Shown here: piece by piece, positions 18,293 to 56,300 of the stretch
Numbering within the stretch: the first letter of the stretch is position 1
Layout of the letters: each line of letters starts with the position of its first letter
Assembly: GCA_035084275.1 (NCBI GenBank)
Contig: CM068769.1
Span: forward strand, 3,348,001 to 3,412,000
Direction of reading: 5' to 3'
Length of the DNA: 64,000 bases
DNA from: Hydrolagus colliei
Taxonomy: Eukaryota
The notes under the pieces: model-generated
Database searches by the model: none
The model's input: only the letters and a program-made list of their open reading frames with translations
What the model was told of the DNA's origin: nothing
Program-made: the position numbers and the translations under genes

Positions 18293-19199
18293 CTAACCTC
18301 ACGGCCATTGTGATCCTGTCCCGAGGGAGGTGCGGTCTCTCCAAATGTGTCTCCCGCTATCTGGTGGCCATGTCAGTGGCTGATCTGATGGTGGTAATTA
18401 TCGTGGTGATTTTCTATCGCATTGTTTATTTTTATTTTCCATTTTCATTGATGAACATCACTCAAGTTTGCGGGCTGCTAGAGGTACTTTATGCTGCAAC
18501 AGCGAAAATCTCTGTCTGGCTAACTGTGGCTTTCACCTTTGATCGATATGTCGCCATCTGCTGCCAACAACTGAAAACTAAATATTGCACCGAAAAACAG
18601 CTGCTGCAGTGATAGCGGGGCTGAGTGTGTTCTCCATTGGGCAAAACATTCTCTGGTATTTTTCCTTCGTAACACGGCACAATATACCGTGGGAATGTGA
18701 ACTTAAACCAAGCTTTTACACTATTCTCCTATGGACAGTGTTTGACCTCCTCGACCTTATTCTAACCCCGATTCTCCCATTCGTTGTGATTTTGCTGCTC
18801 AACGCACTGACTGTCCGGCACATCCTGGTGGCCAGTCGAGCCCGCAGCAGATTGCGAGGACACAGTGAAGGGGATAGGAACAGAGGTGAGAGAGACAGTG
18901 ATCCTGAGATGAAGAGCCGAAGGAAAGCCATTATTTTACTCTTTGCGATATCGGGCAATTTTATTGTGTTATGGATGACATATCTTTTGATTTGGTTATA
19001 CTGGAGAATCTCAGAGTCAACTTATGCTGCAGCCGCCAATGATCCTTTGTAAATTATTCGGGAATCTGGCTTCATGCTGCAGCTTTTGAGCTCCTGTACA
19101 AACACATGCATTTATGCTGTTAGTCAGACTAAATTCAGAGAGGAGATTAAGATAGCGGTGTCATTTCCTTTTACAATAATTGTTAAATTACTTCATTAG
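18293..19199 (+). pseudogene. GPR139-like class A GPCR, large second exon, disabled; exon 1 not found
   Basis: Acceptor ...ctgtag at 18292; NLTAIVILSRGRCGLSKC, AFTFDRYVAICC, NALTVRHIL, SSCTNTCIY. There is a 1-nt slip in an A-run near 18595 and an in-frame TAA at 19050-19052; terminal TAG at 19197-19199. Confidence 0.88.
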
Positions 19200-21355: not shown

Positions 21356-21569
21356 TATCAAAACCAAGTATTATTATTAATATTATTGCTGCAGGTAAAC
21401 AGATGCACATGTGCGGAATAAGAAAAGTTGCACAGCTTGCCACACTGCCAGGAATCAAATCCTGTTCTGTTGCTTGCCCAGATCCCTTGAGATTAAACTA
21501 CAAATCAGCAAAATATGCGCAATGCTACATAAATCTGAATTATATAAATGTTATTTTGCTTTATGTTCG

Positions 21570-23040
21570 AATGGGGGCAGGGGGTGTGTGTGTGTGTAGG
21601 TGGATGGGGGGACTCTTTGTGTGTGTGTCGTGAGTAGGTTTGTGCGAGTGGGATGGTAAGTTTGTGTTTGTGTGGACAGAGTTCGCGGTGGGTATGTTAG
21701 TGCGTGTATGAGGTAGGATTTTGAGTGTGTAGTGCTAGGTTTGTGTGGGGGAGGGGCTAGGTTTGTGGGAGTGGGTAGGTTTTTGTGTGCGGGGGTTATG
21801 TTTGTGTATGTGTGTGAGCGATAGTTTTGTGTATGTGTGTGGGATGTCGGTGGCAGGTTTGTGTGTGTGTGGAGGGAATTGCATGTTGCTATGTTTGCGT
21901 TTGTGAGAGGGGGTTGGATTGTGTGTGTGGGTAATAGGTTTTGTATGGAAGGGGGTAGCGTTGTGTATGTGTGGCGGGGATTATGTTTGTACGTATGTGC
22001 GTGGGGTAGCCGTGGGTGGCGGTGTGGGGAAGGTTTGTGTGCGTGTTTCGTAGGTTTGTGTGTGTAGGTTTCTATGTGTGTGGCGGGGTAGGCCTGTGAG
22101 AGAGGGAGGGTGTCGATATGTGTGTATCTGTGTTGGATGGTAGGTTTGTGTGTGTGCATCCTGGGGTAGACGTGTGTGTGGGGGTGTGAAGATTTGTGTG
22201 TGTGGGAGGGTGTAGGTTTGCGTGTTTGTGCCGGCGGAGTTGGTTTGTGTGTGTACATTGTGTGGTAGGTTTGTGTGGTGGGGTGTAGGTTTCTGTTGGG
22301 TAAGAGAGTAGGTTTGCGTGTTTGTGGCGGCGGAGTAGGTTTGTGTGTGGGTGAGTGTGTAGATTTGGGGTTGGGTAGGTTTGTGTGTGGGATGGGTGTG
22401 GGTATCTCTGTGCTTGTTATGGGGTAGGATTGTTTATGTTGGAGATAGATTGTGTATGTGGTCGTGGGTTTGTGTGCGTGTTGTTAGGTTTGTGTGTTTC
22501 GGTCGGTGGGGTTGGTTCATGTATTTGTGGGGTGGTGGTAGGTTTGTTGGGGGAGGAAGGAGGTTTGTGTTTGGAGTGTGGGCTTGTTTGTGTTGAGGGT
22601 ACCTTTTTGTGTGGATGGGGGTGGTCGGTAGTTTCGTGTGTGGTAGGGAGGGGCCTAGGTTGGTGTATATGTGTGGGATATATTTGTGTTGGTGTGTGCG
22701 AGTAGATATGTGTATGTATGTGTGGAGTAGGGGAGCGTTGTTATGGGGTTGTAGGTTTGTGTGTGTGGGTGTAGCTTTATGTGTGTGTGTGGGGGGGGTG
22801 ACAAGGATTGTGTTGATGTGTGGGGTGGTACGTTTGCGTGGGATGTTGGGTTTGTGTTTGTGTGGGGGGAGGGGGTAGGTTTGTATGTGTGGTGGTAGGT
22901 GTGTGGGGTGGTACTTTGTTGTGTGTGGGGTGTGGGTGGGTATCCGGTTATATATCTAGGAAGGCATAAGTTTGTTTACTTCCGGTTGGTTGGGCGGCGG
23001 GTGGGTGGGGGGGTGGGGTGGGGGGATTCATATGGTGAGA
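21570..23040. repeat. Degenerate GT-rich tandem repeat (gtaggtttgtgtgt-like unit)
   Basis: Recurring gtaggtttgtgtg motif; produces T/H/P-rich and V/C/G-rich spurious ORFs. Confidence 0.9.
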
Positions 23041-26057: not shown

Positions 26058-26191
26058 NNNNNNNNNNNNNNNNNNNNNNNNNNNNNNNNNNNNNNNNNNN
26101 NNNNNNNNNNNNNNNNNNNNNNNNNNNNNNNNNNNNNNNNNNNNNNNNNNNNNNNNNNNNNNNNNNNNNNNNNNNNNNNNNNNNNNNNNNN
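26058..26191. other. Assembly gap (134 N)
   Basis: Run of N characters. Confidence 1.
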
Positions 26192-30400: not shown

Positions 30401-33400
30401 CATCAGATCAAGTCGATGCCTTCACTGCTGCCAGGAGGGTGAGATGAGTGAGTTATTGTTTGTGTGTCTGTGTGTGTTGTGATTGAGCTGACGTCTCGCT
30501 GCAGGGACTGACAAGGGTAAAGAGTGCGAGTGATGCAGTCGGAGTCCTGTTCAAGGAGTTGAAGAGACAGAGCTCGCCAGACACCTACCGCCTGATGGTG
30601 GCCATCGACGGGGCCAATGCCCTCTGGGGACCCACCACCATGAGGTAGGAAGATAGGAGCCAGGTATTGCCTCACATTCCTGATTCCTATTCTTGTCCCA
30701 GCCCTCGCCAGAATCCACTGGCTCCCTATCACACACTAAATTCTCTCCCCCAACACCCCAGCCCTCGCCAGGCTCCACTGGCTTCCCTACCACACACTAA
30801 GCTCTCTCGCCCATCACCTCAGACCCTGCCAGGCTCCACTGGCTTCCTATCATCAAACGCATCTATTTCAAGATCATCTCCATCGTTTTGAAATCTTTTC
30901 ATGCCCTGGCATCTCGCCACCTCTTCGACCTGCTTGCTCACCTAACCCACAACCTCCACTTAACTGACTTGTCCCTTATGCCTTCAGTTCCACCATCAGT
31001 GGCAGCCACTCCATCCTGAACCTCTGAACGCTCTCTGATGGCCTTACCCCCTCCTTCCCCAGTTTCAGGACACTCTCTTTTCACAGATTTTTCCACACGA
31101 GCTGACTCTGATGCACAATTTGAAGAAGCTGGTGAACAATGACTGGGTGAGAGTCTGAGAAAGTAGCCTCTCCCTACAGCACCACACACTCCCTGTGCCA
31201 ATGCTCTGTGTGTATGCGCGTGTGTGTGTGTGGTGTGTATGTACGCGTTTAGGTATGCATTTGTGCACATTATTTTGGAGCACTGAGGGTCTGCCCATAA
31301 AATGTATAGTCAAATCACTTTACAGTGTATCCTGTGAAGCGCTTTGAGACGTTTGAAAGTGATTAGCTGCTGCGTCAAATGTAAGGATTATTATTCTATT
31401 CTAACATAGCTGGACTCCAGAAACTCTCTCCTTGTCGGCCTCCCCAGCTCCTCCATTCACAGACTGCAGATCATCCAAAACTCTGTAGCCCGTGTACTAT
31501 CCCGCACCCACCTCCGTGACCACATAACCCCCACCCTTGCCCGTCTCCATTGGCTCCCCATTCCCCAGAGGATCGAGTTCAACATCCTTGTCCTCGTTTT
31601 CAAGGCCTTACACTGCCTTGCCCAGCCCTATCTATCCGGTTTACTCTCCCCCTATAAGCCCATCCGGACACTCCGTTTAGCAGGACTTGGTTTGCTCCAA
31701 GCCCCCCGCCCGAACCGCCCCACCATTGGAGGCCGGGCCTTCAGTTTCTCCGCTCCCACCCTGTGGAATTCCATCCCCCAATCCCTCCGCCTTGTTTCCT
31801 CCCTTTCCTCTTTCAAGGCCAGTCTGAAGTCTTTCCTTTTCGACCGTGCCTTCTGTCCCCCCCCTAATTCTTCGACCTGCCGTACGTTTCTTACCCCCTC
31901 CCAATCACTCCACTCCCAGCTCGGGTCACACGCCTCCTGTGCAACGCCTTGGGACATCCTCCCGACGTGAAAGGCGCTCTATAAGTTTTATTTGTTGTTG
32001 TGTTACCTGCTGCAGTGTGCTGGAGCTGTGGTGATGACACTGACCAAGACTGGGGCATTGGGTTCCTCCCACGTGTCTCATCTACCCCACCATCTGCTTA
32101 GAAAGGTGAGCATGCTGTGCCCAGATTGACTGAAGCTCCTCCCAAACCTCCCTGAGAGCCCAGCTACTCACTCGCAGTGGGAGGCCTAAGGGTCGTTGTT
32201 GCAAATCCAGTCGCTTTCACACATTGTTAATCAGTAATGCCAAGGAGCCAGTCACTGGGCTACATCTCATCAGGTCCCTGTTCTTCATCTCTTGTCACAG
32301 TTCCATCTCTGCACCCTACACTTTGGAACTCCATCCTGGAGACCCTCTGCATCGCCACCTCCATACCACAATTATTCTGCCTCGTTCCCTACATCCCACA
32401 GTCTCCCTCCGCCTCGCGTCCTCCATCCCACAGTTCCTCTGCCTCGCCTCCTTCAAAACAAGCCTCAAGACCCTCCTCTTTGACTCTGACTTCGGTCACC
32501 CTCCCTGCCATCCAGTTCGCGACCATACCTTGCGTTCAGCATCTTGAGACCTCCTGCGGACATGAAACACACTGTGCGCATGCATTTTGTTGCTATTACA
32601 TCTTCTGCTCATGACTGACACTGTTCCTCTCTATCTCTCTCCTTTCTCTCCCCCCAACACACTGTAACCTCTGCAGGAAGGCTTTATCACTTTGGACCGT
32701 TTTGTTCCAATCGAAGTTAGGAACTACAATGAGAAAGAGTTTGAAAGTTGCTATCAGTACTATGTGGAACGCAAGTGGATCCAGCATGAGAAAGGTACGG
32801 AGCGAGGAATTAGTGTGGAGTTGGGGGACAAAGCTATTTACTCCTTGCATCCTCTCTGGTTCTTTTGACACCAGTCTGTATTTTCCCCCCATTTACTTGT
32901 TGCAAATGCTCTCCGATCTTTGAAAACCACAATCAGATAAGCTTTGTGTAATACAGTGCAGAGAGCTGGGATTGTTGGGATTCATTCCGCCGCCTCACAG
33001 ACTAATTATCTCACTGCCTTTCCACGTGCCCACAGCTCACACAGAGGAGGGGAAACAGGAGCTGCTTTTCTTGTGTAACTACAATCCAGGAATGATGGAT
33101 GGAGTCCGCAGCTTCCTCTAAGCCCTGAGCAGAAGGAACCTGTCCATTTGCTACATTCTCTATTTCTCTCTTGTCGAGGGGAGTGATGGCCCAGGATGTG
33201 GCCGAGTTTGCCCGGCCATTAGTCGGCATTCTGCTCCACCAGCCACAGAGGCCAACGATGATCACTGCCTGGCTCACCCAATCAGTAGCGACTGCCTGCC
33301 AGCCTGACACGAGATGTAATGTAACCTTGTGAAGTCTGGCCTGGGAGAGACGTCTCTACCTTACAGACTGCAATGAACCAGTGCCTGATGCCACAACATC

Positions 33401-34198
33401 TCTTTCACACGTCTCTTTCACACTGGTCATGTTTCAAACCCTGAGCTGCTGCGTGGAGGATGCTATACAAGTGCAAGTGGTTCTTGTCTCAACAATAACA
33501 AATGACATTTTTATCCTGCCTTTCATGTCAGGAGGATGTGTGCGGGTGTCAAGGCTGCAGTTTGTTTTAATGGAAACCATTCCAACATTCATTTTCCGAA
33601 CGAGTACGAAAGGTAAATGAAATATATGTATGTGTCAGAGTGAATATGAAAATGTCGTGAATGTTGTTAAGGCAGCGGTGAGTGTGAACGATGTGACAAA
33701 AGAAAGAGAAAACGGACAGAAAGGATGTCCTTCCTTCCTTTTGTATATCCTGGTACTGGCCACTTACCTTTGCGGATTAAAACATATCAAAAACACTCAA
33801 GTGAGTAAGGAGGCTTGTTTCAGACATCTGTCTCTTGACGTTTTCAGGTCTGCCCCCCCCCCCAACGTCTTTCCCGACCTTTCCCACGCGTTTGCGGCTT
33901 CGGTTTGGGCGCCAAATCGTGTCTGAGGTAAAGAGGCAACGGGTATAATAATAATAATAATAATAATAATCCCGGACTTTGGCGTGTTCAACCCCTTTGA
34001 TGTGTAGTAACTGTTTGTTTCCGGGGAGGCTACAGTGTAGTGAATGTGTGTTTGGTGTCTCTCTCTCTCACACTCGCACACAGTGGACAGGCTGATGGGA
34101 GAGGGATCAGGAATGACACCTTTAATAACCAGTCACTACAGTGTACCCAATGTATTACATATCACACACTGTGTGGACAGTCACTGCCTCAGTCACTA

Positions 34199-37100
34199 TC
34201 ACAATATCACTGACAGCCCAGCTCTGGATGCCCCCAGTGACCTCAGCTGTCTCTGTCCGTCTGAACTGAACTGATTCCCCCCCAGCCTGAAACACATGAA
34301 ACAGCAAATAACCATCTGATCACAATATAAACTGGAAACTCTTCACTCGCAGGTTAATCAATCAATAAATCCCCTCAAACTTTCTCCATCCCGATACCCA
34401 GCCCCGTTCTCTGTGTGTTTATCACATTAAACACTGACACAAACACTCACCAGATCCTCTCCAGGCTGGTGCAGGTCAGTGTGAGGCGGCGGAGAGCGGA
34501 GACAGAGGCGTCTGTGAAGGAGTTAGATTCCATGCTCAGCTTCCTCAGTGAGCGGCTTGTACTGAGAGCGGAGACCAGATCATCAGTGCAGCCATCGGTC
34601 AGATTGTTACTGATCAGCCTGGAGATCAGAGACACAGAGACATGACAGGGATCAACAACAACAACAATATGACTTGTGGGGAGGACGTCACAAGGCGCTG
34701 GACAGACAGTGTCTCAGACTGTGATGGGGGGGGGGGGGGGGGGTGTGAGAGGAGAACGATGGCGGGTTTGTTGATGGGGAGGGAGGGAGTTGCGGCAGAG
34801 AGGTAGGGACTGAGAGAAGAAGGTTGCTGGGGCGAGGGAGGGAGTTGAGGGGTTGGAGTGAGACCTCAGTGGAGGTAGAGGAAGGAAGTGAATAGGAGTG
34901 AGGGTCGTGGATAGGACAGTAGATAGTGAGTGAGCGAGCTGTGGAGGGAGAGAGGGTGTTTGCTGGTGGGGGAGGGAGGGAGTTGGGAGAGAGAGGGTGG
35001 GAAAGGAGCTGGGGAAGCGAGGGACAGAAAGGGAGTGAAAGAGAATGGGAGGGAGAGCGAGACATGGAGGGAGAGAATGGGATGGAGGAAAGGCGATTGG
35101 AAAGGAGTGACTGAGCTCTTGTAAAAAAAGTACTACCACCATTACCGTGGTACTGAGGGAGGAACGGAGGGAGGGAAGGAGGGGGTGGGGGGGAACATGG
35201 AGGAATGGCTGGGTTAAGCTGTGCAGATGTGGCAGGGAAAGGGATAGTGTTAGCTAGGGAGAGAGAGTGGGAGGGGTAGAGAATGGGGCAAGTGATAGAA
35301 TGAGGGAGGGAGAAAGCGAGCTGGTGCAGGGAGAAAGTTAGAGAGCTGGGCGAGGGAGCGAGAGAGGAAGAGAATCGGAGTGAGTGAGGGAGAGCTGTGG
35401 GAGAGAGAGAGAGAGTGGGAGGGAGCTGGAGAGGGATGAAAAGGTAAAGGGAGATGAGGGAGTGGGCTGCGTTATGAGGGAGCTGGGGGAGGGAGAGAAA
35501 GTGACGGAGGGAGGGTAGGAGGGGACTATCCTGGCAGAAGGAGGGAAGTAGAGAGTGAGGGAATGATTGAGGATGTGATGGAGGCAGCGTGGGAATGATG
35601 GAGCGTGTTTATCGTGGACATTCATATTCGGGAGATTATATTTTAACAGTCTGTTACTCACCACAGTGTCTGTATTTTACACTCCGAGTTCCTCAGAGCC
35701 TCACACAGTGACTTCACTCCAGAATCCCCCAGATTATTGCCCACCAGCCTGGACAAGGAGACAGAGACACAGTGAATATATTGTAACAATGCAATACACA
35801 TTTACATCTATATACAGGAGCTGGGGCCAGGGTCAGATACCTGAACGCACACACACATACATCGTTACCAAGACCTGGTTGGTTCAGACAAACACTGATA
35901 TTTTCATTATAGTCACATCAGGTCAGGTCTCAGACCTTTACAGGGACCGGATTGGAGTGCGAGAGAGACAGAGATCCGATTGGGTTATCTCAGTCTCTCT
36001 CTCACTCTCATTCTCCCTGTCTATTCCGCTCGCTGTCTCTGTCTCCCTCTGCCTCTATCACTTTCTCTCTGCCATTCCCTTTCTCTGTCTTTCTGTCACT
36101 CCCAACTCTCCCAGTTGTTCCATCTACCTGCTTCTCTCTCTCTATCACTGAGAAACTCTCCCTCAGTTATTCTCTCTTTTTTTCGCTCTCTTTCTTTCAC
36201 TCCCTCCCGTTACTATCTCACTGTCTCCCCATTTGTCAGTCTATCTCAAACAGTCTTTCTGTCTCACTGTCTCTCAGTGTCCCTATCTCTCTCTCTTTCA
36301 CAAACATCCACTCTCCGTTGGTCACCCACTTCTCTCTTTCTCCAACTGAGTTTCCCATTCCCAGTCTCTATCTCTGTCTTTATTTCTCACACTTTGAAAT
36401 CCTGTAGGTCAGTGGTTGGAGCAGTCGCGTGACAAGCGTTAGACATGTGTTCGATTCTATTCAGGTCAGTGAGACACATGGGTCCTTACTCTACACAAAT
36501 GGCTAATAAAAATCCCATCCCCCAAAAAACGGGTCATTTCAACACACTGTTGGCTGTTTGTGTGGACGCTGCTATGCGGAATTGCCTGCCGCGTTTCACC
36601 TACAAACAATAATATGCTATAAACAAATATAGAGTCAATTCGCTTTAAAGTATATTATGTGAAGCGCTTTCGGACGGCTAGAGGATTCAGAGGAGTGGGA
36701 AGATTTAAATACAAGTATGAGGATCTTGAAAATGATTCTATCCAAGCCACGGAGCCAGTGCAGTGTGGCAACAATTGGGTTAACGGGTGAGTGGAATTTG
36801 CTCCCAGTTGTCCTCTTCCATCTCCGACGCATCGCCCTTCTCCTACAATATCTCAACCACAAAGCTCCAAAAACCCTGTTCCATCTCTGAGCCTCTCGCG
36901 TATACACTCACGCTCACTCAGTCACTCCATCTCTTTCACCCACTCAGTCTCTCTGTCTCTTGCTCACACACAGTCTCTCTATCAGTCTGTTGCTTTCTCC
37001 AAGAAACCTAGCGATCTGGAAATCCCTTCCTCACTGCCTTCGCCTCCTCCCCTCTCTTCCCAGTTTTGGGTCTCAGCTAAAGACCTTTCTCTTGGATCGC

Positions 37101-40100
37101 ACCCTTGGGGAACTCCCCCCTCAAAGAGAGCAGTCAGCAGCCAGTCATTTGACACAGCAGCTCACACACCCCACACTGACTGTCTGATATCCACCAGGTT
37201 TCTCACTGTGACAATCAATAATAACAAACCAGATAACTCGGCACTTGTGCAGTGCGGGCCCCAGGCACTGGATCCCTTCAGGTCCGATCTGACAGTTGGT
37301 GAGATTGAGTCTCTCTATGGTGACATGGGGATGTAACTTCATAACCAGCAGAGCACAGGTCGAAGGGTTCAATGTGATTCCACTAAAGTCCAGTGTCTGC
37401 ATAGCTTCGATTCTATTCGGGGGCAGTTTGCTGCTCAGAGACTGAATCAATTCTGAAAGAGAAAGGTCGGGAATAGTTTGATCAATGGGAAACAGACGAC
37501 GAATTGTTTCATGAAGTTAAACCAGCGCTGGGGTACGGTACCACACGGGATGCACTGGGAGAATTCAGTGAAATCCTGTGTAAGGCCAAGACTATCAATG
37601 CGATAATCCAGGGTGAGATCGTGGATAGTGAGGGTTTTGCTGGAAAGACATTGTGAAGGGCTTGCTCTTTGGGGGTGAGGGGGTGTTGAGTGGTGCGGAG
37701 AGGATTTGAGGGTGCACAGAATAAATGGAGAGTTGGGAAAACTACGTATGAGGAAGATTATATTATGATTGCCTTAAGCGGGCGGTTTGTGTGGAGGGTG
37801 TGAATGTTAGGGCAGCTGGGGAGGGCTGCTCTGGGACTCCCAGCGCCTGGAGTCATGATTACAAAATCAACCACAATTTAAATTTATAAAGTGCCTTTTA
37901 CGTTGGGAGGACGTGGCACAGCACTGCACAGGAGGCGTGTGACTCGGGCTGGGAGGGCAGTGTTTGGGAAGGGGTTAAACACGTAGTGGAGGTCGAAAAA
38001 TTCGGGGGCGAACAAAAGCCATGGTCGAAGAAGAAAGTCTTCAAACCGGCCTTGAAAGAGGAAAGGGAAGAAACAAGGCAGAGGGATTGGGGAATGGAAT
38101 TCCACAGGGTGGGAGCGGAGAAACTGAAGGCCTGGTCTCCGATGGTGCGGTGGTTCGGGCGGGGGGCTTGGAGCAGGCCAAGTCCTGCTGAACGGAGGAT
38201 CCGGCTGGGCATATAGTTGGAGAGTAGATCGGTTAAATGGGGCGGGGCAAGGCCGTGTAAGGCCTTGAAGGTGAGGACTAGGATCTTGAACTCGAACCTC
38301 TGGAGGATGGGGAGCCAGTGGAGACGGGCGAGGGTGGGGGTTATGTGGTCGAGGAGGCGGTTGCGGGATAGTACATGGGCTGCAGAATTTGCGATGACTT
38401 GCAGCCTGTGAATGGAGTAGCTGGGCCCGAAGTAGGATTCCCAGCCTGGAGCAGAGGGCAGTGTTGATGGCGTCCAGGAGAGAGAGAATGTGTGGGATGC
38501 TAGGAGATTAGGGCAGAGTGAGAGAAGCGGATAGAGGGGGGTGAGAGGAAAGACATTTAGATTTGAGAGCAAGGCTCGGGTCGGGGCGGAAATGCACATG
38601 CAGAAACCAGGAAGGAGTGATTAGCAGGATGGATTCAGCCCGCAAGCTGTGTGGTCATGGCTAAGACAAGTTAGGACAACCCGGCAGCAAATTTCACACA
38701 GCAGTATCCTACAAACAGTCGCGGATGAGCGTGTGTTTTTTTTTGAAATTATTATCTGGTATGACGAATAATTAATTAATACTTAGTAATTAATTTTCCC
38801 ATGAATTTGCCCTGCCTGGAATCGAACCCAGATCTCTCGCTTGTAAGGCGAGAGCTCAAACTGCTGAGCCACAAGACTCCCCAAAATCTTTCAAAAGCAC
38901 TCACCTCCCCTACAACCCTCACAGCCACAACAGCCTTCACACTAATCTGGGACTTCATACCTTCTGGCGTTTCTTGCATCTCCTGTGTCAGTGAACTTTG
39001 CTGCTCCTGTACTTTACGAGCTGTGGCTTCCTTCTCCTCCATTAACTTCTGCCTCAATTCTTCCACAGACAATTCCAGCTGATGGATCCTTTCCGCTCCC
39101 AGTCGCTTCTCCTCAACCAGTTGTTGGTGAACCTGAGATTGCTCCCTCATTCTCTCCAACTGATCCATTTTCTCGTGTTGGGCTGGGAAGGGGAAACATG
39201 CAAAATCCAATGTACTGATGAGTGTCAAACACTGTGAGCAACAAAATACCAGTGACACAGGAGACTGGAATCACCACCTAACAGCATTTTGTGGCCCAGG
39301 CTCCACCCGCAACCTATACAGCTCTGTCATCTCATACCTTGAACGAGCGAGATTGAACTGATTGTGGGAAAGACTTCGAAACGGTGGGGGCAGAGAGGTG
39401 GAATAGTAGAGTTGGGTGCCAGCTGGAGGTTCAAAAGTAGAACAGACAGTCACTTTCCTCTCCATCGCTTGTCTTCCACCGTCCACCTCAGTGGGGCTAC
39501 ACACGCTTGGTTGGGGTCCTACCTCACAAACCGCCTGCTCTATATTAACTCTAAATATTTCCACTGCCCGTTGCTACCCAGTCACCTGCGGAAAACCACG
39601 AGGACCTATCCTTGGCCCATATGCTGCATGTGTACTGGGATATTCTGGGCCTGTGCATATGCGGGGACTGGCTGTCCCAGTGGAGCTGTATGGGCGCTGG
39701 GAGCTTTGTGTGAGATGGGCTGTGCTGGGAGCTGTGTATGTGCTGGGCACTGTGCGTGCTGTAGGCTATGTGTGTGCTGGGAGCTTTGCTTGTGCTGTGT
39801 TTGTGCTTGGGGCTGTGTGTGAACTGGGCTAAGCTGTGGGCTGTGTGTTTGCTGGGATATACTGGGGTTTGTGTGTGTGTTGGACTGTGCTGGGGTACTA
39901 CGTGTTTGTTAGGCTATACTGGGGTATGTTTGTGAGGTCGGCTATGCTGGGGACTCTTCGATGGAGGCTTTGTGTGCTAGGCTGTTCTGGGGGCTGTGTG
40001 TGCTGGGCTATTCTGAGTGCTGTTTGTGCTGGGGCCTGTGTCTGCTGGGGGATGTGTTCAAGTTTAGAGTGGAGAGACATTTACCTGGGTCGATGCTGTC

Positions 40101-41980
40101 TCTGATCTCTCTCTCAGGCAGATCAATCTCACACACTGACAGCTGAAAATCCAAGTTACTGATTCTGTAACAAGAGACATTCACAATGTAAAGTGAAGCT
40201 ACGCAATGTATTTGGTTTGTATAATAAGTTCTGGGATACTTAGTAAACCAACATTCCATACCTTCTTTTCGGATCAACTTGTTCCTAATTAAATCAAACA
40301 CAGATAGAATGAGTCACACTGAGACATTACACTGTAAAGTCAGACGTAACAATACATTTCCATATTACACAGGTTACTGCTATTAGTATTAACAATAATA
40401 ATAAATGTTGCGTTTGACATACTGCTTTTCATGCCTTCTCGACGGCGTCTCCAAGCGCTCCAACGAATATACTGTGAAGTAAATTGGCTGTATATTTGTA
40501 GGCGGACCGCATCAACCAGATGCACAGAGTAGCATCCGCAGAAACAGCCGTGGGTTGAAATGACCAATTTTATTTTTTTTGCTGCTTTACTTGCTCATTA
40601 CTGTCCGCAGAAGTAACCGAGTTTGAATATCAACAGTATAGACCGTATACTGTCTATGACTAACAATTTACTCATAGACAATGACACACAGTGGGAACTG
40701 CTTACAACCACATCTTACAAACATAAACACACGGTAGAATATAACAAATAATAAATCACTGACATGTCTAACTGTCAGACTATAGTTGTGAGAAACTGTT
40801 GCTTAACGAAACTATAATTTATTATATTTACCTGCAGAAAGGACACCGTGTCCTTTTCCATCATTTTCTGTAACTCTGAGATTTCTTGCGTAACAGAATC
40901 TAAATTTTCCTGAATCTCTCGCAGATTTGTCTCCATTTTATGCAAAATCTCCTTCTCTCGCTGAGTGAGATCTCCCATCACCAGCTCCTCTCTGTCAGTC
41001 AGGCTCCGGTGCATTTTATTAACTTCAGACGTGATGTGGGTCATCAGACTGCTCACCTGTTCCTGTAAAATATCAGACATCACACTGTACACACACTGAA
41101 AGGAGACGTTGAGACATCGCACGCAGTAAACATAGTGCAGGTAGACACTGAGCCATCACATTGTGTACACAGAGCAAAGGGAGTAACTGGGACATCGCAC
41201 TGTGTACACAGACTAAAAAGAGACGCTGACATATCGTACTTAGTACACAGAGTAAAGAGACACCGAAACACCGCACTCTGTATACACAGTGAAGAGGCAG
41301 CGAGATGTCACGAAGTGTACACATTTTAAAGTTAAACACAGATACCAAAATAATCAGGCCCAACACAATTTACCTTAACTTGTGAAATCTTTTCTCTCTG
41401 TTTGACTTCAGCTTGCACAGCAGTTTTCTTCCTCTTTGTGAGAGAGGCTAAGGAGGATCTCACTTGATCCTGGAATATACACGTAGAACAAAAGGGTTTG
41501 AAGTCAAGAATATGAAGTGAAATAAAATGAATCCCACTCTAGAGTGAATACAGTGGGAGGTATTCTTACCTTGTATGTTTCGGCAGCTTCATCAATGGGC
41601 TGGAAGCTGTGATCCCTGTGTTCTCGCCCATGGCTACAAATGGAGCAGATCAATTTCTTGTCAGTTTCACAGAAAAGTTTCAGTTCCTCCCGGTGTTTCT
41701 CACAATTGGGTTTAGTTTCTATTTCTGTCGAGGACAGGCTCAGTTTCTGAGCTTTCTCTGCTAGACTCGCCAAGGCACAATTCACCCTGAGGTTCCTCTC
41801 TGGAAAAATCTCCTGACAGACAGCACAGGAGTTTATCTGCTGTTTTTCCCAGCTGCTCGTGATACAGGAGCGGCAGTAGTTGTGCCCACAATAGAGGGAA
41901 ACAGGATCAGTGAAGAACTCCAGACAAATGGGACATTTTAAATCCTCAGTCAGATCCTCAACCTGGAGTCTAAAAGCCAT
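34199..41980 (-). CDS. TRIM (RING-B-box-coiled coil) fused to an extra coiled coil and RI/NLR-type LRRs; predicted 542 aa
   Basis: Exons 41980-41570 (411 nt; C3HC4 RING and B-box2), 41469-41374 (96), 41062-40832 (231), 40284-40262 (23), 40164-40085 (80), 39182-38961 (222, coiled coil), 37452-37230 (223), 35748-35662 (87), 34618-34451 (168), 34286-34199 (88, ends TGA). All are GT-AG with compatible phases; total 1629 nt without a stop. ATTAAA lies at 34121-34126. Confidence 0.85.
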
Positions 41981-44900
41981 TTTTAACCTCAGCACTTTCT
42001 GTTCCAAGCCTGGTTTCACTTTCATTGTGGGCATGTGTGGGCGGCTCCCTGTTCGCTTGCCTGTCTGTCGAACCCTCCCCTTTAGTCTCCTCTTGTGAAA
42101 TCCTCTCATTATGAACGTGAATCTGGGAGACCAGGAGAAAGCCTTGTATCCTGATCACAGTCACATGGGAGGCACAATTCTCTGTTCTTTCATTCCACTT
42201 TTGTCACCAGTGTAACACCCAGTGTTTGTCCTGGGCTGGGAAATGGGAAGAATAATAATAATCCATTTGTTTGGTGAAGCACGTTCACTGGGTTAACGAG
42301 GACAGTCCAGAGTTGGGCCATAAAGCCGGTGTTGTCTATGGGCTCTGGGATAGATTTCTGGATAGCGGGGGAGAGTAGAACGGCTAAAAGCATGACCTCC
42401 AATGGTTGGACCTGGGGGTAGGAGATATGGAGCTGTGAGTTTTCTCAGAAAGTGACACACAGAGATACGGTCGCCCACACCCTATCACGCCCACATCACA
42501 CTCTGATAATGTTGTTTTTGTTTCAGATTCCCAGAATCTACAATATTTGACTTTATCTGATACTTTAGCTCTCCACAGCTCTCAGCGGCAGCCGTCTGGC
42601 TGTTTGCATTTGAAATATTTCTCACTTCTGAGGCTCACTAAAGGGAGAGTCACTGTCAGGGATATTCAGAATGTAATAGTGTTGAGGTAGAGCCAGAAGC
42701 AAAGTTTGTAAACGCTCAATAAAGTTTGGTAATACGGTCACCCATTCCAACATGTAGCTGCTTACAATTCACCTGCTGATCTGTACTGTGCACTTGGTCA
42801 ACATGATATCCAGATCCTTCTACACAATCCATTAAACAATCCTCAAACATGTTATCACATTGACATGTTCAGGCTTTACCTGCCGACCTGTAATTGGCAG
42901 ATCAGCAAACGCCTCGTCTCCACGTTACACAGACTTACAAACTGATGTAAAAACAATACACACCAGCACACAGAGCTCTTCGGAGAATTCATGGAATGAT
43001 TTCTGTCACTACTTTGTTCATTACAGTATTATATCCCAGCTCTACTATTCTGTTGTATTTTGTCCCCGGTGAGTTCCTTCATGCTGGACAGGCAAGCGGC
43101 AGATCTCTGTCTGTTTGTGAACTGAGACTCTCCTCGATGTGGCTCTCACCAAAGGGAGAGGTGCCCCTCAGAAATTCGTATCCATCCAGCGTAACAAGTC
43201 ACTGCGTGTATAATTTACTGGCAGAACTGTTGAGGATTGGAACCATCTACCGAGACTCGATGAAATGCGGAATGCATATTTGAATTTAATTTATTCTCCT
43301 ATCATTTGGAACTTGGACTCAGAATCTCCTTGCCTCATTCCCTCATTTGCCTCCTCGAAGGCACATTACAAGACCCTCCTCTTCCAATTCCAGTCACCAT
43401 CCTTTGCTCGGGGGAATGGGACAGTTTGAATTAAGAGGGAGGGGGAGGGTTACTTCTGTTTGGGAACAGAGCGAGGCTAGTTGGGGTAGCTGGGACGCAT
43501 TGTAAAATGTGCTTATTCAGTTTTCTATTTGTAAGACAAACTGTAATGTTTAGTGACCGTGTTTTTTTTTCTGAGACAAACTATAAAATTTAGTGACAGT
43601 GTGGTTAGTGTGTGAGATGCACTTTAAGGTGTAGTGACTGTGTGTATGTGTGTGAGACACACTGTAATGTGCAATGCATTATCACGCGTTGTTCCAAGTT
43701 TGAGTTTAATATGAAAGTACAATGCAAAGACGCATGATATAATCACGTTTAATTAACTATTGAACTTTACGCCCCGGGGATGTGGGGACTTTGCAAACCT
43801 GTTTCCCGTATTTTACACAGAGAGGAGATTGTTATTAAAATACAAGGTTAATGCGAAAACACGTTTATATGTTTGAATTAGGAATGCTGTGCGCTGTTGC
43901 ACTAACAATCCTGGGAATCTGGGGAGTTTATCACCTGCTTCATGTGTTTATAAACTGGAGTTTAACAAACTATTTCCTTTAAACCCTGACAACCCCATCC
44001 CCCCCCCCACCACGATTGCTCTCACACTGACTTCCCCCTATTGCCCTCACATTGAACCTCCCCCCCCCCCCACAGGAAATGGCTGCAAAATGTAGTGACT
44101 GTGTTTGGGGGTAGGTAAAGTGTAGTGACGGTGTGTTTGTGGGGAGGGTAAATTGTAGTGAGTGTGTGTTTGTGATAAAGTAGTGTGTAATTTTTATTGC
44201 TTTCGTTGTTTATTGTTGTTATTTATTCCCCCACTTGGCCCTGACCTTTTCCACTTTTCTCTTCTTCCCTCCCTCCCTTTCCCCGCCTTTTCTCTTCCCC
44301 CCCTCTTCCCTTTTACCCCGTTTTCTCCCTATTTCTCCCTGATCTTGCCCTCCACCAATCTTTCCCTCCCTCACTCCCATACCCTCTTTTCCCTCTTTCT
44401 CGCCTGGCCCATTTCCACGACTGTTTGTGGGACACTGCTGTGCGCAATTTGGCTGCCATGTTTCGCCCACAAATAGTCAATTCTCCTACTCTCCTTCCTC
44501 CTGCCCCGACCCCTCCCCTTGTCCCTGCCTCACATACAGCGCCTTGGGAAGTCCTCTTGACTTGAAAGGCACGATATAAATGCAAGCTTTGATTGATTTG
44601 ATTGATTGACTGTGGTGTATGAGGTCAGACCATGATGACATCACCCCGTCTCCCAGGTAACCAGTGATTGACAGGAGATAGAGAGAGTGACCCCCACCCC
44701 ATGATGTCTCCAGGCTGAAACTCCAGGCCATCACAGGGGGGATTGTGATGTCAGACCCGGCGATGTGGACAAATATTGTCTGTTTCCACGTTAGTTAAGA
44801 CGCGAGAGAGGGAGAGACAGGACCCCCAGCCCCCACAGCTCAATAGCATTGGCTAGTCAAGCACTGGGATCCGTTATCACAGAGAGAATGATGGATCACT

Positions 44901-45750: not shown

Positions 45751-46079
45751 GTATGAGTGGATGGGGGGCGGTGTGTGGATGTGTGATAATAGTACTAATA
45801 AAAACAATAATAATTTAATACTCACATTGATACAGCAACCATTTATAATAATGTATGATGCAATTATTGTCATTATAGTATTGACAATGTTCATTGCATT
45901 TGATATAGTGCTGCTCACGTCTTCTAGACGTCTAAAAATTCTTCACAGAATATACTGTGAACTGAATTGACTGCGTATTGTGGGGCCAAACGTGGCAGCC
46001 GATTTGGCACAGTAATGACACAACAATGACACCCCCCACCACACATTACAGGCATGTGTATAGCATCATGGCTTCACAT

Positions 46080-47220
46080 GTGTGTTGACCGTTGGCGGTG
46101 GCTCGAGACGAGGAGTGTGAGGGAGGATGTGTGTGAGGGAGGAGGGGTGTGAGGGATGGGGTGTGAGGGAGGATGTGTGTGAGGGAGGGTGTGTGTGAGG
46201 GAGGGTATGTGTGTGAGCGAGGGTGTGTGTGAGGGAGGGTGTGCGTGGGAGGGGGTGTGACGGAGGGGGTGTGTGTGAGGGAGGGTGTGAGGGAGGGTGT
46301 GTGTGAGGGAGGGTGTGTGAGGGAGGGTGTGTGAGGGAGGGGGTATGTGAGGGAGGGGGTGTTTGAGAGAGGTGGGTGTGTGAGGGAGGGGGGTATGTGA
46401 GGGAGGGGGTGTTTGGGGGAGGATGTGTTTGTGGGAGGGTATGTGTGAGGAAGGGGGTGCGAGGGAGGAGGTGTGGGGGAGTGTGTGTGGGGGAGGGTGT
46501 GAGTGAGGGAGTGGTTGCACGAGGGAGCGCGTTTGTGAGGGAGGGCGTGTGTGAGGGAGGGCGTGTGTGAGGGAGGGCGTGTGTGATGGAGGGCGTGTGA
46601 GGGAGGGTGTGTGAGGGAGGGTGTGTGAGGTAGTGTGTGTGAGGGAGGGGGTGTGAGGGAGGGTGTATGTGAGGGAAGGTATGTGTCTGTGTGAGGGAAG
46701 GTGTGTGTGTGGGAGGGTGTGTTTGGGCTGTGTTTGTGCGGAGGTGAGAGTTTTCAGGGGGTGGGATGTGTGTGTCTCTCTCTCTCTCTCTGTCTCCCTC
46801 TATGTGTGTGTTTGTGCGTGTGTGCGTGTTGTCTCTCTCCACATCTCTGTGTATGTGTCTCTGTGTACGTGTCCCTTTCGCTATGTCGCTGTGTGTGTCT
46901 CTCTCTCTCTGTCTATGTATGTGTCTCTCTCTGTATATGTGTGTCCCTCTCTCTGTGTATATGTCTCTCTCTCTCTGTCTCTGTTTGTGTGTCGCTCTCT
47001 CTGTGTATGTGTCTCTCTCTCTGTCTATGTGTGCGTCTGCCTGTCTCTATCACTGTTTGTGTGTCCCTCTCTCTGTGTGTCTCTATCTATCTCTGTGTCC
47101 GTATGTGTGTGTCTCCTTCTCTGTATCCGCGTGTATCTCCCTCCCTCTCCCTCTCTGTATCTGAGTGTGTCTCTCCCTGTCAATGTGTGTGTGTGTGTTT
47201 GTGTGCATCTCTCTGTCTGT
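46080..47220. repeat. (GAGGGAGGGTGTGT)n-like minisatellite followed by a TG/TC low-complexity tract
   Basis: Tandem gtgagggagggtgtgt units to about 46760, then mixed (tg)/(tc) runs. Confidence 0.9.
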
Positions 47221-47789
47221 GTTCCCCCATTACCCCAATACTTGCCCGACTTCACTGTCTTCCTGTCCCAGAGAGGATGGACTTCCAAGATCCTCACCCT
47301 TGTTTTCAAATCCCTCCACTCCTCCGCACCCCACTATCTCACTGATCTCCTCTCCCTACAACCCAGCACCCGCTGCCTTCGTTCCTCTGGATCTGGCCTC
47401 CTCCATGTCCCCCGCGTCCTCTACTCCACCCTCGGCGGCCGCGCCTTTAGCCACTATGCCCCGTGGCTCTGAAACTCCCTTCCTCACTCCGTTCGCCTCG
47501 CCCCCTCTCTTCCCAGATTCAGGTCACAGTTGAAGACCTTTCTATGTGACCGAGCTTTTGGTCACCTTCCTGCCCCAGCTCCTGGCTCGGTCCCGGGATC
47601 CGCTACTGTAAAGCACTCTGAGATGCTTTCTGGCGTGGAGGGCGCTATATAAATTGAAGCTGTTGTTGTGTGTGTGTGTGTGTCCCTGTCTCTCACCTGT
47701 AATTGGCTCCATTACAACCAAAGTGTAGGATCCAGCGCTGTCCAGGACTCTGTATTTGGTGACTGCGCTATGAGGGTCTCGATTCCCTC

Positions 47790-52812: not shown

Positions 52813-53312
52813 TGTGAAGTTGTAATGTTTTGTTCGTTCCCAGAACCGTTGTCTTACAAACAGACCATACACAGTGGATAAGAAAATGTAAAGTTTATTT
52901 GCTATAGCAAGAGCTGATTCTCAGAAGTCAACAGTCTCCAAGTAGAGTACCTGACAGTCAAAAGAATGAGCTGCCGGTGATCAGTTAATGCAGCCTTTTC
53001 ATACCCAAAAAGGCAGGGGTTTACAGTACACACAAAGGCAGTTACAGAAACATTGTCAATCACATGGTTCCAACAACTATTCGATTCAGGCGAAAACAAG
53101 CTTATCTCCAGATGGCGTCTGGACTAGACAACGTCTCAGTTTCTTCAAAGTTTGCAGGAGTTACTGTTCCCTGCCCTGTGAAATACTTAGATAAGGATGC
53201 GACTGGCATTGTGCCAAATCTGCATTTCACAGGACTTGTTTTTTATGTTTAATTGGGTTAATAGTATAGAAGTTACATCTAGGCATAAATGGCAAACATT
53301 TTCAATTTCACA
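52813..53312 (-). repeat. 5' LTR (500 bp)
   Basis: Colinear with 47790-48318 apart from one indel and scattered substitutions; TG...CA termini. Confidence 0.88.
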
Positions 53313-56300
53313 GGAGTGTGTAGGTTTCTAGATGGGTGTGGTGTGGCAAGTTTGTGTGTGTGTGTGTGCATGTCGCGGGTAAGTTTGTTTGTGGGAGGGT
53401 GGGGGTGCGCGGTAGATTTGTGTGGGTGGGAAGGCGTAGGTTGTTAGGTTTGTGTGTGTGGGGGGGGTACGTTTGTGTGTGTGGTGGTGGTGGGCGTACG
53501 TCGATATGTATGTGTGGAGCAGATTTTTGTTGCGTGAGGGTAGACTTGTGCGTGTATGTGTGGGGTAGGTTTGTGCTGGTGTATCCGGGTATGTTTTGTG
53601 TGTGTGGGATGGCGGTGGCTGGGTAGGGTTGTATATATGGGAACGGTAGGTTTGTGTTTGTACTTTTAAAAATGTGTGGAGGGTTACAGTTTGTGAGCGA
53701 GTGGGGAGCGTAGATTTGTATGTGCGTGTGTGTGTGTGTTGGGGGGTAGGTTTGTGGGTGCGTCATGAGGTACGTATGTGTGCGGGTAGGGGGTAGGTTT
53801 GTGTGTGTGGAAAGGCTTAGGTTTGTATTTGAGGGAAGACGTAGGTTTGTGAGTTTGAGGCGGGTTAGGTTTTTGTTTGGGTTGAGTGTAGGTATGTGTG
53901 CGTGTGGGGGTTAGGATTGTTTGTGTTGTGGGAAGATTGTGTGTGGGCGTGGGTTGGTCTCATTTGTGGCAGGGTGATAGGTTTCTGTTTGTGTGGGTGA
54001 GGGGTATTTTTGTGTGCGTGGGAGGGTGTAGGATTGTTTGGGTTCGGGGTAGCTTTGTATATTGGGGGGTGGGTAGGTCCTTTCGTGTGGATGTTGATGT
54101 GTACGTGTTTGGTAGATTTGTGTTGGTGTGTGGGTGTACACTTGTGTGTTTATGTGTGGGCTAGGTTAGTGTTGGTATTTGGTTGCAGGTTTGTGTGTGT
54201 GGGATGGTTTAGGTGTGCATGTGTGTGATAGAGGAGAAGGTTTGTGTCTGGGATGGGGGATCTTGGATGTGCGGGAGTGTGGTAGGTTTGTGTGTGAGGG
54301 TATAGGTTTTTATGTGAGTTGGAGCGTCGGTTTGTGAGTGAGGGTGGTTCTCGATTTATATGTGTGTGGGTTGAGGGGTAGATTGTGTGTGTGGGACAGG
54401 TAGGTTTGTGTGGTGGTAGGGGAGGATAGATGGGGTAGGATGGTGTGTGTGGGGTGTAGATTGTGTGTGGGCGGTAGGTTTGTGTGTGTGTCTTGGGCTA
54501 CGATTTTTGTGTGGGGAGTGTTGCGAGGATTCTTTGTGTTGGGGGTAACAGTGTGTGAGGGTGGATAGGTTTGTGTGTATTTGGAGGGGTGGATGATAGG
54601 TTTTTGTTTGGTAGGTGGTACGTTTGTGTGTTAGGGTGAAAAGTTTGCGTTGGTGTCTGGGGGTAGCTTTGTATGTGTCGATTGGGTGTAGGTTGGTGCG
54701 TGAGTTGGGGTCAGTTTGTTTGTGTGGTGAAATATTTGTGTGGGATAGTAGGTTTGTTTGTGAGTGGTGGTAAAGAGGCTTGTGATGGTGTGTGTGGGGT
54801 TATGTTTGTGTTTGGGTGGTGGGGGGCTGTAGGGTTCTGTGTGGGGGATGGGGGGATTCGGTTTGTTTGAGTGGTGGTAGGTTTGTGTGGGATGGTTGGT
54901 TTGTATGTGTGTGAGTGTATGTTTGTGTGTCTGGGAGGGAGTAGTTTTGTGTTTTTGTGGGGAGGCAGTGGGGTGTGGTGGTCAGACGGTGGGTGTAGAG
55001 AGGCTGAAGGTATCCTCGATTATATCGGAAACTGCTGAGCACAGGGAGCCGCCAGATTGATCTGGGGTAAAACGTTGCAGGTGTAGATGCGAGAAAGGAA
55101 TTTGAAGGTGATGAACGATCAGTATTTTCGTTGTATTCCTGTGTTGGGAAGCCAAAAGAAATGCATCCCTGTGTGACGGGAAGCCAATAGAATCAGAACG
55201 AATAATATTGATACAGTTGCGGAGACATTTGCATGGGATTAAATGGGATGCAAATGTTTGGATTATCTGTAGTTTATGGACGGAGTTGTAGGGACGATAA
55301 GAAGTAGGAAGTTTACATAGTCAAGAATGGATATTATGAATGTGTGAGTGCAGGGGGCGAGAAAGGTGGTTAGTGATAGGCAAATGACCAAAAGCAAAGA
55401 GACCAAATCGTGTACGCAAACGGGCCTTCAAGTAGGCGAGGGAAAGTCAAAGACAACTATACTCCGTGATGGAGTTGCATAGAAGTGGTCTGAATGGGCA
55501 AGACGCAAAAGACACAGTGTTTTTGCCAAGAGAGGAGATATGAAGCAGGCCACTGTCTACATAGTGGGAGGTGTGTGTGCGAAAATGCTTGAATTAAAAA
55601 TTGTGATTAATTCCTATCTTAAGGACACAAAGATACAATACCGCTCGATCTGCATCAGCTCCATCAAAGTATCTTTCGAGTGCACTTCATTCCATTAGAC
55701 CAAGGATAACCAAAGGCCCCTTTCCGCAGAACCAATCACCTCATCCACCCATGCTGTTATGACTCACACTTCCTAAAATCCAATTACAAATGGATTACAA
55801 TCAATGTACTTGTGTCCAAAATGGAAATACTCTACTCTGGTACAACTAACGTCCAATTCCCTCATCCAGTCTGCACCAAATTCTTCATGTGTACAGTCAA
55901 AACATCTCTCCATGTATCTCTCATCTCCCATCTCTTGTGTAAAAGCTGGCGTGGGCTCACATGACCTGTTGCCATGAATACACCGATCAGCTCGAACTTG
56001 TCATCTCTCTTCTCGTCTCTCAACCTCTCCCTCCGCATCCACTCCACCATCTATTTTCGTGGCCACCCACTTAAACTTGTGGCCGTTTTTTCTCGGATAT
56101 CAGCATCATTGGAAAAGCCATCTCTGAACACAACTTCATCTCCTTCAACTTCCCAGTCATTTTAAACAGCGATGCCAAACCCACCACCATCCTACATATG
56201 CATTGGAAGAAAATCTCCACATCATCGATCTCCGGATAACTGGATTCATCTCAATTGGTCCACAGCTGGCCTACGTCCCGTGCGAAGCATCCTACTCACT

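Follow-up and report, generated by a model that had tools for sequence, protein, structure and literature searches.

We analysed a stretch of 64,000 nucleotides (nt) of the Hydrolagus colliei genome (assembly GCA_035084275.1, contig CM068769.1, positions 3,348,001 to 3,412,000), referred to below as the window. Its minus strand carries a candidate gene in which the RBCC part (RING, B-box, coiled coil) of a TRIM protein is followed by leucine-rich repeats (LRRs) of the type found in NLR proteins. We consider it somewhat probable (about 0.55), judging from the DNA, that a TRIM-LRR transcript is produced from this locus, i.e., that it represents one fusion gene. By its RBCC the predicted product belongs to the TRIM family; by its architecture it is neither a class IV TRIM nor an NLR. 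The locus is a structurally distinct further case of an RBCC-LRR architecture that has already been sequenced, and left unnamed, in chondrichthyans. A broader, tentative reading, at somewhat less than even odds, is that the PRY-SPRY domain of interferon-type TRIM genes was repeatedly exchanged in cartilaginous fishes for the LRR tail of NLR genes, with one or more events in holocephalans, one in batoids and perhaps a separate one here, and that the resulting genes form an undescribed class of TRIM-LRR immune sensors.

Gene model and predicted domains

The model was rebuilt from the raw DNA and, as predicted from sequence, comprises ten minus-strand exons between positions 41980 and 34199 of the window (7.8 kb). 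All introns (9/9) have GT-AG borders, and the 1629 spliced nt encode 542 amino acids (aa) and a stop codon without a single internal stop, in agreement with the first-pass annotation of this DNA. Candidate exons could be chosen freely, and the in-frame join therefore carries weight only in combination with the homology results. The order of the domains in the predicted product is RING, B-box2, TRIM coiled coil, linker, and an LRR domain of the ribonuclease inhibitor (RI)/NLR type.

Exon 1 (41570-41980, 411 nt) contains the ATG, the C3HC4 RING (aa 16-55), and the B-box2 (aa 93-124). The RING was matched by the Pfam models zf-C3HC4_4 (1e-11) and zf-RING_UBOX (1.4e-12), and its zinc ligands are complete (C-x2-C-x11-C-x-H-x2-C-x2-C-x12-C-x2-C). 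The B-box was matched by PF00643 (aa 90-129, E 4.5e-9), with all ligands in place (C93, H96, C104, D107, C112, C115, H121, H124); thus, both domains are complete, as had been proposed. The coiled coil begins in exon 2 (41374-41469, 96 nt), which has the same length in the Callorhinchus milii loci L005, L007, and L001, and continues in exon 3 (40832-41062, 231 nt), which has 56-66% aa identity to C. milii TRIMs. Its match to PF25600 (TRIM_CC, aa 160-247, E 2e-5) is sub-threshold, at 24.9 bits against a cut-off of 30. Exon 4 (40262-40284, 23 nt) ends in phase 2, and exon 5 (40085-40164, 80 nt), the TRIM L2 linker exon, ends in phase 1 and is the last TRIM-derived piece. The exon sizes had been described as typical of TRIM genes, and the lengths of 411/96/231 nt were found to be identical in the three C. 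milii TRIM loci.

Between the two halves lies exon 6 (38961-39182, 222 nt, phase 1 to 1), a candidate exon for an orphan helical segment (aa 281-354). The LRR part is encoded by exon 7 (37230-37452, 223 nt, phase 1 to 2; LRR N-cap and first LRR), exon 8 (35662-35748, 87 nt, phase 2; one RI-type LRR with 86-89% DNA identity to the LRR exons of C. milii locus L006), exon 9 (34451-34618, 168 nt, phase 2; two LRRs with 85.7% identity to L006), and exon 10 (34199-34286, 88 nt including the stop; C-terminal LRR cap). Of the phase-2 LRR exons described earlier, exons 8-10 indeed start in phase 2, whereas exon 7 starts in phase 1. A candidate polyadenylation signal, ATTAAA (34121-34126, minus strand), is located 73 nt past the stop, and this segment of the 3' flank is conserved with L006. 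All six LRR strings quoted in the first-pass annotation were found in the translation. The LRR part was matched by Pfam LRR_6 (E 7.7e-10), and the C-terminal 188 aa matched ribonuclease inhibitor (4per, E 6e-44) and the LRRs of NLRP3 and NLRP14, with E-values ranging from 6e-44 to 1e-36, as well as those of NLRP5; the repeats are of RI type and bear both an N-cap and a C-cap. An InterPro/HMMER-type check of the product, made with Pfam, returned RBCC domains and LRRs, and no SAM or F-box domain was detected in the 542 aa by this search. RING E3 ligase activity and dimerisation of the product are predicted.

The absence of a NACHT or B30.2 exon between the two parts was borne out over the entire window. 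With a C. milii B30.2 domain as query, tblastn gave no more than noise in the gene region at E up to 50, and no PRY-SPRY/B30.2 sequence was found in the rest of the 64 kb either. In the same 64 kb, no NACHT, FISNA, WH, or HD2 sequence was found by tblastn with the NLR proteins P0173, P0186, P0141, and P0237, and the list of stop-to-stop open reading frames (ORFs) of the window contained no NACHT-sized exon. With TRIM-SPRY and full NLR proteins as queries, tblastn detected one TRIM (41980-40085) and one LRR tail (37462-34199) in the window.

Origin of the two halves and related genes

The proteins closest to the TRIM half are C. milii TRIMs named “zinc-binding protein A33-like” or “nuclear factor 7” (62-67% identity). 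The DNA of the window is collinear with the C. milii TRIM loci over a stretch that begins ~170-210 nt before the ATG and takes in exons 1-4 with their introns, with an identity of 72-75% to L005 (the TRIM-SPRY gene of P0027) and 77-78% to L007 (the TRIM-LRR gene of P0028). For exon 1 with the promoter and intron 1, the identity to L005, L007, and L001 was 72-78%. Homology to L005 reaches into exon 5 and ends there; exon 5 carries a 36-nt in-frame deletion, leaving the linker 12 aa shorter, and is missing from L007. On the phylogenetic tree of RBCC sequences, the window was placed inside the C. milii A33-like clade (100/100 support), where it formed, together with the C. milii TRIM-LRR and TRIM-SPRY clades, a trichotomy in which no two of the three paired. 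A placement of the window RBCC within the C. milii TRIM-LRR clade was considered and not adopted, given this trichotomy and the fact that, in its DNA, the window has diverged more than any other of the four loci. The collinearity and the tree indicate that the TRIM half, comprising the promoter and exons 1-5, is derived from an A33/xnf7-like TRIM of class IV type.

An element resembling the interferon-stimulated response element (ISRE), GAAAGTGAAAC (42013-42023, minus strand), is located 43 nt upstream of the ATG; it fits the ISRE/IRF consensus. The ISRE-like motif GAAAnnGAAA(C/G) was also found at -43 in all three TRIM-LRR copies of the sawfish Pristis pectinata, and L005, the C. milii TRIM-SPRY gene, has it at -42; the background density of the motif is 3.9e-5 per strand position. 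The element appears to belong to the promoters of the entire A33-like TRIM subfamily, and the TRIM-LRR gene may be induced by interferon.

Exon 7 corresponds to the final ~75 codons of the chondrichthyan NLR NACHT exon. In the exhaustive HMMER search, it proved homologous to “...YLFESQN..LAQ..LGSVETLSFSG.TLTPIDCAVLSHV....IKHLDL..C.I..EGIQRLGP.LHKC” of chondrichthyan NLRP3/NLRC3-like proteins, and in the sawfish NLR locus L004 its counterpart forms the 3' terminus of the large NACHT exon, with the donor at the same codon position. In the window, similarity to NLRs sets in at 37462, which is 10 nt before the exon-7 acceptor, and there is an in-frame stop 21 codons upstream. These features identify exon 7 as the 5'-truncated end of a NACHT exon, encoding the LRR N-cap and provided with a new acceptor. 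This acceptor, a polypyrimidine tract with AG, scored 7.6, the second-strongest value in the gene. Its phase, 1, is that of the exon-5 donor and of the lost B30.2 exon, so exon 5 joins exon 7 in frame with or without exon 6. The idea that exon 7 took over the former B30.2 acceptor was rejected, as the DNA shows no similarity to the B30.2 acceptor region of L005. No B30.2 relic was found after exon 5 or elsewhere in the window, in contrast to the sawfish, in which a relic of 74 aa is present. The match of exon 7 to the NACHT exon and the conserved donor position support the exon-shuffling origin proposed earlier, in which a TRIM gene was joined to the 3' end of an NLR gene.

The short LRR domain is a native format and not a product of decay, because the C. 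milii NLR fragment P0152 is built identically on four exons, with a cap, a single LRR, a pair of LRRs, and a terminal cap (61-68% identity). On the tree of LRR tails, the window grouped with C. milii sequences, both the NLR fragment and the TRIM-LRR (96/81), and the batoid TRIM-LRR tails formed their own clade among batoid NLR tails. Exons 9-10 of the window were closest to C. milii TRIM-LRR-type tails.

Proteins combining RBCC and LRRs were found in further cartilaginous fishes. In the batoids Mobula hypostoma, Hypanus sabinus, Pristis pectinata, and Hemitrygon akajei, they are the proteins P0009-P0025, annotated as “ribonuclease inhibitor-like,” “NLRP14-like X6,” or “TRIM26-like” (41% identity over 92-100% of the model). 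In C. milii, they are P0028, P0034, P0036, P0045, and P0047, annotated as “nuclear factor 7, brain-like,” and the Ensembl protein P0110, with no automatic name, has a coiled coil and LRRs. At the genomic level, L001 and L007 of C. milii have RBCC exons followed by LRR exons. The sawfish locus L002 (WOXU01000069.1, 10001-67054) contains three complete units in 57 kb, each consisting of RBCC, exon 5, a PRY stub, an LRR array, and a terminal exon. In the public isoform P0015, RBCC exons from the first L002 copy are combined with LRR exons from the third, 47 kb apart; the annotation of this tandem array is probably chimeric in part, though every genomic copy is a complete unit. In Mobula, P0018 maps in order to a 13-kb gene (L003) and another gene starts 6 kb downstream, giving at least two copies. 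The NACHT exon is absent from all of the RBCC-LRR loci L001, L002, L003, and L007 and present in the control NLR locus L004. The window has the same properties: an A33-like RBCC and an NLR-type LRR part on one strand, arranged compactly, with neither a NACHT nor a full B30.2. The AlphaFold2 model of Mobula P0018 showed an LRR domain with a predicted local distance difference test (pLDDT) score of ~90 or more, a coiled coil forming one long helix, and a disordered linker and PRY stub. Foldseek superposed this predicted LRR domain on ribonuclease inhibitor and NLRP3 at ~2 Å.

The window gene shares with the C. milii and batoid models the A33-like RBCC, the RI/NLR-type LRR exons, the type of terminal cap exon, and the lack of NACHT; the C. 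milii and batoid genes differ in having longer LRR arrays. The junctions also differ. In C. milii, exon 4 is spliced directly onto phase-2 LRR exons, with neither exon 5 nor a cap (P0028, P0110). In batoids, exon 5 is followed by the first ~35 aa of PRY and then by LRRs, and the 74-aa B30.2 relic was left in the DNA. In the window, exon 5 is followed by exon 6, if used, and then by the NLR cap. The architecture is thus not confined to the window, as RBCC and LRR models exist in C. milii and four batoids. A named TRIM-LRR family was absent from the full-text literature searched, most subscription journals lying outside its scope. Genes of this architecture occur in chondrichthyans as tandem families, and the junction of the window was absent from the other 17 RING and LRR proteins retrieved.

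Descent of these genes from one founding fusion was not borne out: there are three junction types, and the trees split holocephalan from batoid sequences. The batoid TRIM-LRR RBCCs are nested among elasmobranch TRIMs, and both the RBCC and the LRR trees sort by lineage and not by architecture. As both halves follow lineage and the junctions differ, recurrent TRIM-LRR fusion would most simply explain the data. An alternative is concerted evolution after one old fusion.

Divergence, weak links and rival explanations

The ratio of non-synonymous to synonymous divergence (dN/dS) of the RBCC was estimated by the Nei-Gojobori method for exons 1-3 against the three C. milii loci. Pairwise ratios were 0.35-0.65, and the exons contained no stop or frameshift. 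Three-taxon partitioning gave a dN of 0.12-0.155 and a dS of 0.22-0.30 for the window branch (ratio ~0.45-0.62), similar to the annotated TRIM-LRR genes L001 and L007. By our estimate, a neutral frame of 280 codons would have gained several stops at this dS, and none is present. These values suggest that the window RBCC is evolving fast but under constraint.

For the LRR part, a segment of 566 nt covering exon 9, intron 9, exon 10, and the 3' flank is 85% identical to C. milii L006, which is the tail of P0200 and a sister of the TRIM-LRR P0110. Compared with L006, exons 9-10 have 35 replacement and 3 silent changes (dN 0.216, dS 0.047, ratio 4.6, Fisher p 0.0045), a value that comes from a single pair and is not assignable to one lineage. 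Variable x positions of the LxxLxLxxNxL beta-strand motif were changed in 10 of 15 cases, against 15 of 69 elsewhere (p 0.0013). An excess of replacements on the ligand-binding face is the usual signature of diversifying selection in LRR receptors, and the concave face of the LRR domain may be diversifying here as well. Together, the RBCC constraint and the replacement excess on the concave face agree with the hint of selection given in the first-pass annotation.

Several observations weigh against the existence of a single functional TRIM-LRR gene. The RBCC branch of the window is long: at 85 highly conserved columns, 7 residues are changed, compared with a median of 2 (rank 13 of 119), and zinc ligands account for none of the 7. 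The LRR tail is only ~15% diverged from its nearest paralog, the intron included, and the exons are no more conserved with L006 than the intron is (85.7 / 84.0 / 83.5%); because the divergence is so low, the intact LRR frame alone is weak evidence of function. In exons 9-10, dN is close to the intron divergence (about 0.18) and dS (0.047) is oddly low, so that the high ratio could in part be due to relaxed constraint and chance, and the low synonymous divergence relative to the intron possibly reflects gene conversion or small numbers. The NLR cap occurs in none (0/17) of the other RING and LRR proteins retrieved, which leaves the junction type of the window without a second example, no public protein at least 90% identical to either half turned up, and the exon-1 ORF had no public record.

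The same holds for exon 6 and the exon-7 donor. The region-restricted protein search returned no homologs of exon 6 at E up to 10, and Pfam and PDB matches were noise; in the exhaustive HMMER run, the best 150 matches were all to LRRs and none to exon 6, and the exon was not found as a repeat in the window or in the fetched loci. The coiled coil reported earlier ahead of the LRRs is therefore confirmed for exon 3, a TRIM coiled coil, whereas exon 6, without a homolog, stays a candidate exon. In the 2.6-kb gap, it ranked best of 221 open phase-compatible AG..GT candidates and was the only one with both splice scores at its level, resembling established TRIM exons; these scores come from approximate position weight matrices and serve for ranking only. 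AlphaFold2 predicted a single long helix for the exon-6 peptide (pLDDT 95). The exon-7 donor, CTG|GTTTGT, scored -0.3 against 3.9-6.8 for the other donors, with its position conserved. The frame is kept when exon 6 (222 nt) or exons 5-7 (525 nt) are skipped, and a join of exon 4 to exon 8 is also in frame and would mimic the C. milii paralogs. The exact ten-exon form including exon 6 is somewhat less likely than not.

The main competing explanation, which we regard as unlikely yet substantial, is that the locus consists of two juxtaposed remnants, namely an RBCC-only TRIM without B30.2 that ends by read-through after exon 4/5, and a dead 3' fragment of an NLR gene, their in-frame join being coincidental and aided by the free choice of exons. 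RBCC-only models are common in C. milii (e.g., P0026 of 300 aa, with read-through after exon 5), and read-through past exon 5 of the window meets a stop after 25 codons. The orphan exon 6, the weak exon-7 donor, and the equal identity of exons and intron to L006 fit this explanation, and the young LRR tail could have stayed open by chance (P about 0.1, estimated from the 15% divergence). However, such remnants would not readily account for a strong polypyrimidine/AG acceptor exactly at the point of NLR truncation and in the phase of exon 5, for replacement changes clustered at LRR ligand-face positions with a dN/dS significantly above 1, for the recurrence of the TRIM-then-LRR order as duplicated units in other species, or for the conserved poly(A) signal region. 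A separate LRR-only gene of the “ribonuclease-inhibitor-like” kind, starting at Met373 from its own promoter in intron 6 beside an RBCC-only TRIM, appears improbable: the in-frame ATG in exon 7 (aa 373) and the public LRR-only models P0200 (146 aa), P0154, and P0218 are consistent with it, but these models are mostly contig-end fragments (the L006 array extends past the end of its contig), nothing resembling a promoter was identified upstream of exon 7, and the acceptor at 37452 would be left without a role.

Very improbable is an ordinary NLR gene whose NACHT exon lies beyond the window, with the TRIM nested in an intron, or else a chimeric assembly. Both TRIM and NLR genes are multicopy and rich in repeats in these genomes, and intron 5 contains 400 nt of low-complexity sequence. 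Against the former, the NLR cap is normally contiguous with the NACHT exon and is here cut off, with the in-frame stop 21 codons upstream; moreover, no NACHT exon was found in the 22 kb upstream on the gene strand, and the bona fide NLR gene L004 is only ~6 kb long. Against the latter, the sole run of Ns in the window (26058-26191) is far from the TRIM-LRR gene.

If one fusion gene is indeed present, the NLR gene would have broken inside the NACHT exon just before the LRR cap. Of the NLR tail, exon 7 would retain the N-cap and first LRR, exons 8 and 9 three further repeats, and exon 10 the C-terminal cap, with the TRIM B30.2 exon and the NACHT part of the NLR both lost and the TRIM exons spliced onto the LRR exons. 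Transcription would probably proceed from the interferon-type promoter element. Like other TRIMs, the product would dimerise through an antiparallel coiled coil and act as a RING E3 ligase, in which a short RI/NLR-type LRR horseshoe would pick the target instead of PRY-SPRY, its concave face diversifying as in immune receptors. The target might be a pathogen component, the protein acting as a sensor or restriction factor like TRIM5alpha, TRIM21, and LRSAM1 (PMC8567218), or a partner in an NLR pathway, the protein acting as a regulator.

Outside the TRIM-LRR locus, the window contains three open exons of the immunoglobulin (Ig) superfamily: a V-set exon ending in the J-like “FGNGSEVIIAG” (2946-3332, minus strand), and a V-set exon (9799-10221, plus strand) followed after 570 nt by a C1-set exon (10790-11344, plus strand). 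These exons are possibly parts of an Ig-like gene or of one for a cluster-type antigen receptor. Sequences similar to rhodopsin-type G-protein-coupled receptors (GPCRs) are located at 18259-19049 (plus strand) and 58267-59179 (minus strand), each split over overlapping ORFs in different frames, and both are probably frameshifted pseudogenes. The public NLR model P0186 has the same GPCR-like peptide as its N-terminus, which looks like a chimeric annotation. The description of the TRIM-LRR gene as the only intact coding sequence in the window was thus partly right: the two GPCR-like ORFs are frameshifted, but the three Ig-domain exons are also open.

Repeats make up other parts of the window. 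ARAGORN detected a tRNA-Val(TAC)-like sequence in intron 6 (38807-38878, minus strand), with ~80% identical copies at other places in the window and in L001; this sequence probably represents the head of a tRNA-derived short interspersed nuclear element. A 560-nt interspersed repeat is present at 37861-38425 (minus strand) and 31443-32000 (84.6% identity), and five more copies occur in C. milii L006 with a 3.6-kb period, one per LRR exon unit. Fragments of long interspersed nuclear elements (5036-7847, minus strand; 62096-62815, plus strand) contain endonuclease and reverse-transcriptase ORFs broken into several frames. CA/TG-rich low-complexity arrays were found at 21554-22975, 46049-47469, 53311-55320, and, in intron 5, 39620-40040; they yield spurious long ORFs in several frames and coincide with strong GC-skew excursions.

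Comparison with known systems and significance

In the innate immunity of vertebrates, the two large families that serve intracellular recognition are the TRIM proteins and the NLRs. To our knowledge, the only documented exchange of a module between them is that of B30.2 in teleosts. There, the B30.2 domain is shared with NLRs, whereas here the direction is opposite, NLR LRR exons replacing the TRIM B30.2. The sharing of B30.2 exons between teleost finTRIMs and NLRs provides a precedent for the exchange of recognition modules under diversifying selection (PMC2657112). The standard TRIM classes C-I to C-XI include no LRR class (PMC10445537), in agreement with the statement of the first-pass annotation that LRRs are not among the standard TRIM C-termini.

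The window gene resembles class IV TRIMs (A33/xnf7/TRIM39-like and, functionally, TRIM5alpha and TRIM21) in the order of RING, B-box2, and coiled coil and in the 411/96/231/23 exons; the promoter and introns align, and the ISRE-like element at -43 is held in common. Unlike them, it lacks PRY-SPRY, has a linker 12 aa shorter, and ends in LRRs. With NLRs (NLRP3/NLRP12/NLRC3-like) and ribonuclease inhibitor, it has in common the homologous cap, RI-type repeats of 28/29 residues, phase-2 exons, and the terminal cap, but not NACHT, FISNA, WH/HD, or an effector domain. As these are absent, the product cannot be a nucleotide-switched oligomerising NLR. In LRSAM1, FBXL proteins, and bacterial NEL (IpaH-type) ligases, LRR recognition is likewise tied to ubiquitin ligation, but they are unrelated in descent and in the arrangement of their domains: in LRSAM1 the LRR is N-terminal and the RING, with SAM, is C-terminal; FBXL needs SCF, and NEL is not a RING. 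LRSAM1 recognises bacteria by its LRR (PMC8567218, PMC11863841).

A TRIM with NLR-type LRRs, if real, would represent a twelfth kind of TRIM C-terminus and would show that, in vertebrates, LRR recognition can be coupled directly to a RING ligase with no NACHT switch involved. It would also put right the misleading names (“ribonuclease inhibitor-like,” “NLRP14-like,” “nuclear factor 7”) that automatic annotation gave to dozens of public chondrichthyan proteins. TRIM intron 4 and the LRR introns are both in phase 2, and such genes would offer a natural experiment in recurrent exon shuffling enabled by matching intron phases. If PRY-SPRY was indeed replaced repeatedly, the window copy would keep the raw breakpoint and may have exonised a new 74-aa helix, and TRIM-LRRs would recognise their targets through a diversifying LRR face and respond by ubiquitination, a mirror image of the NLR-B30.2 proteins of teleosts.

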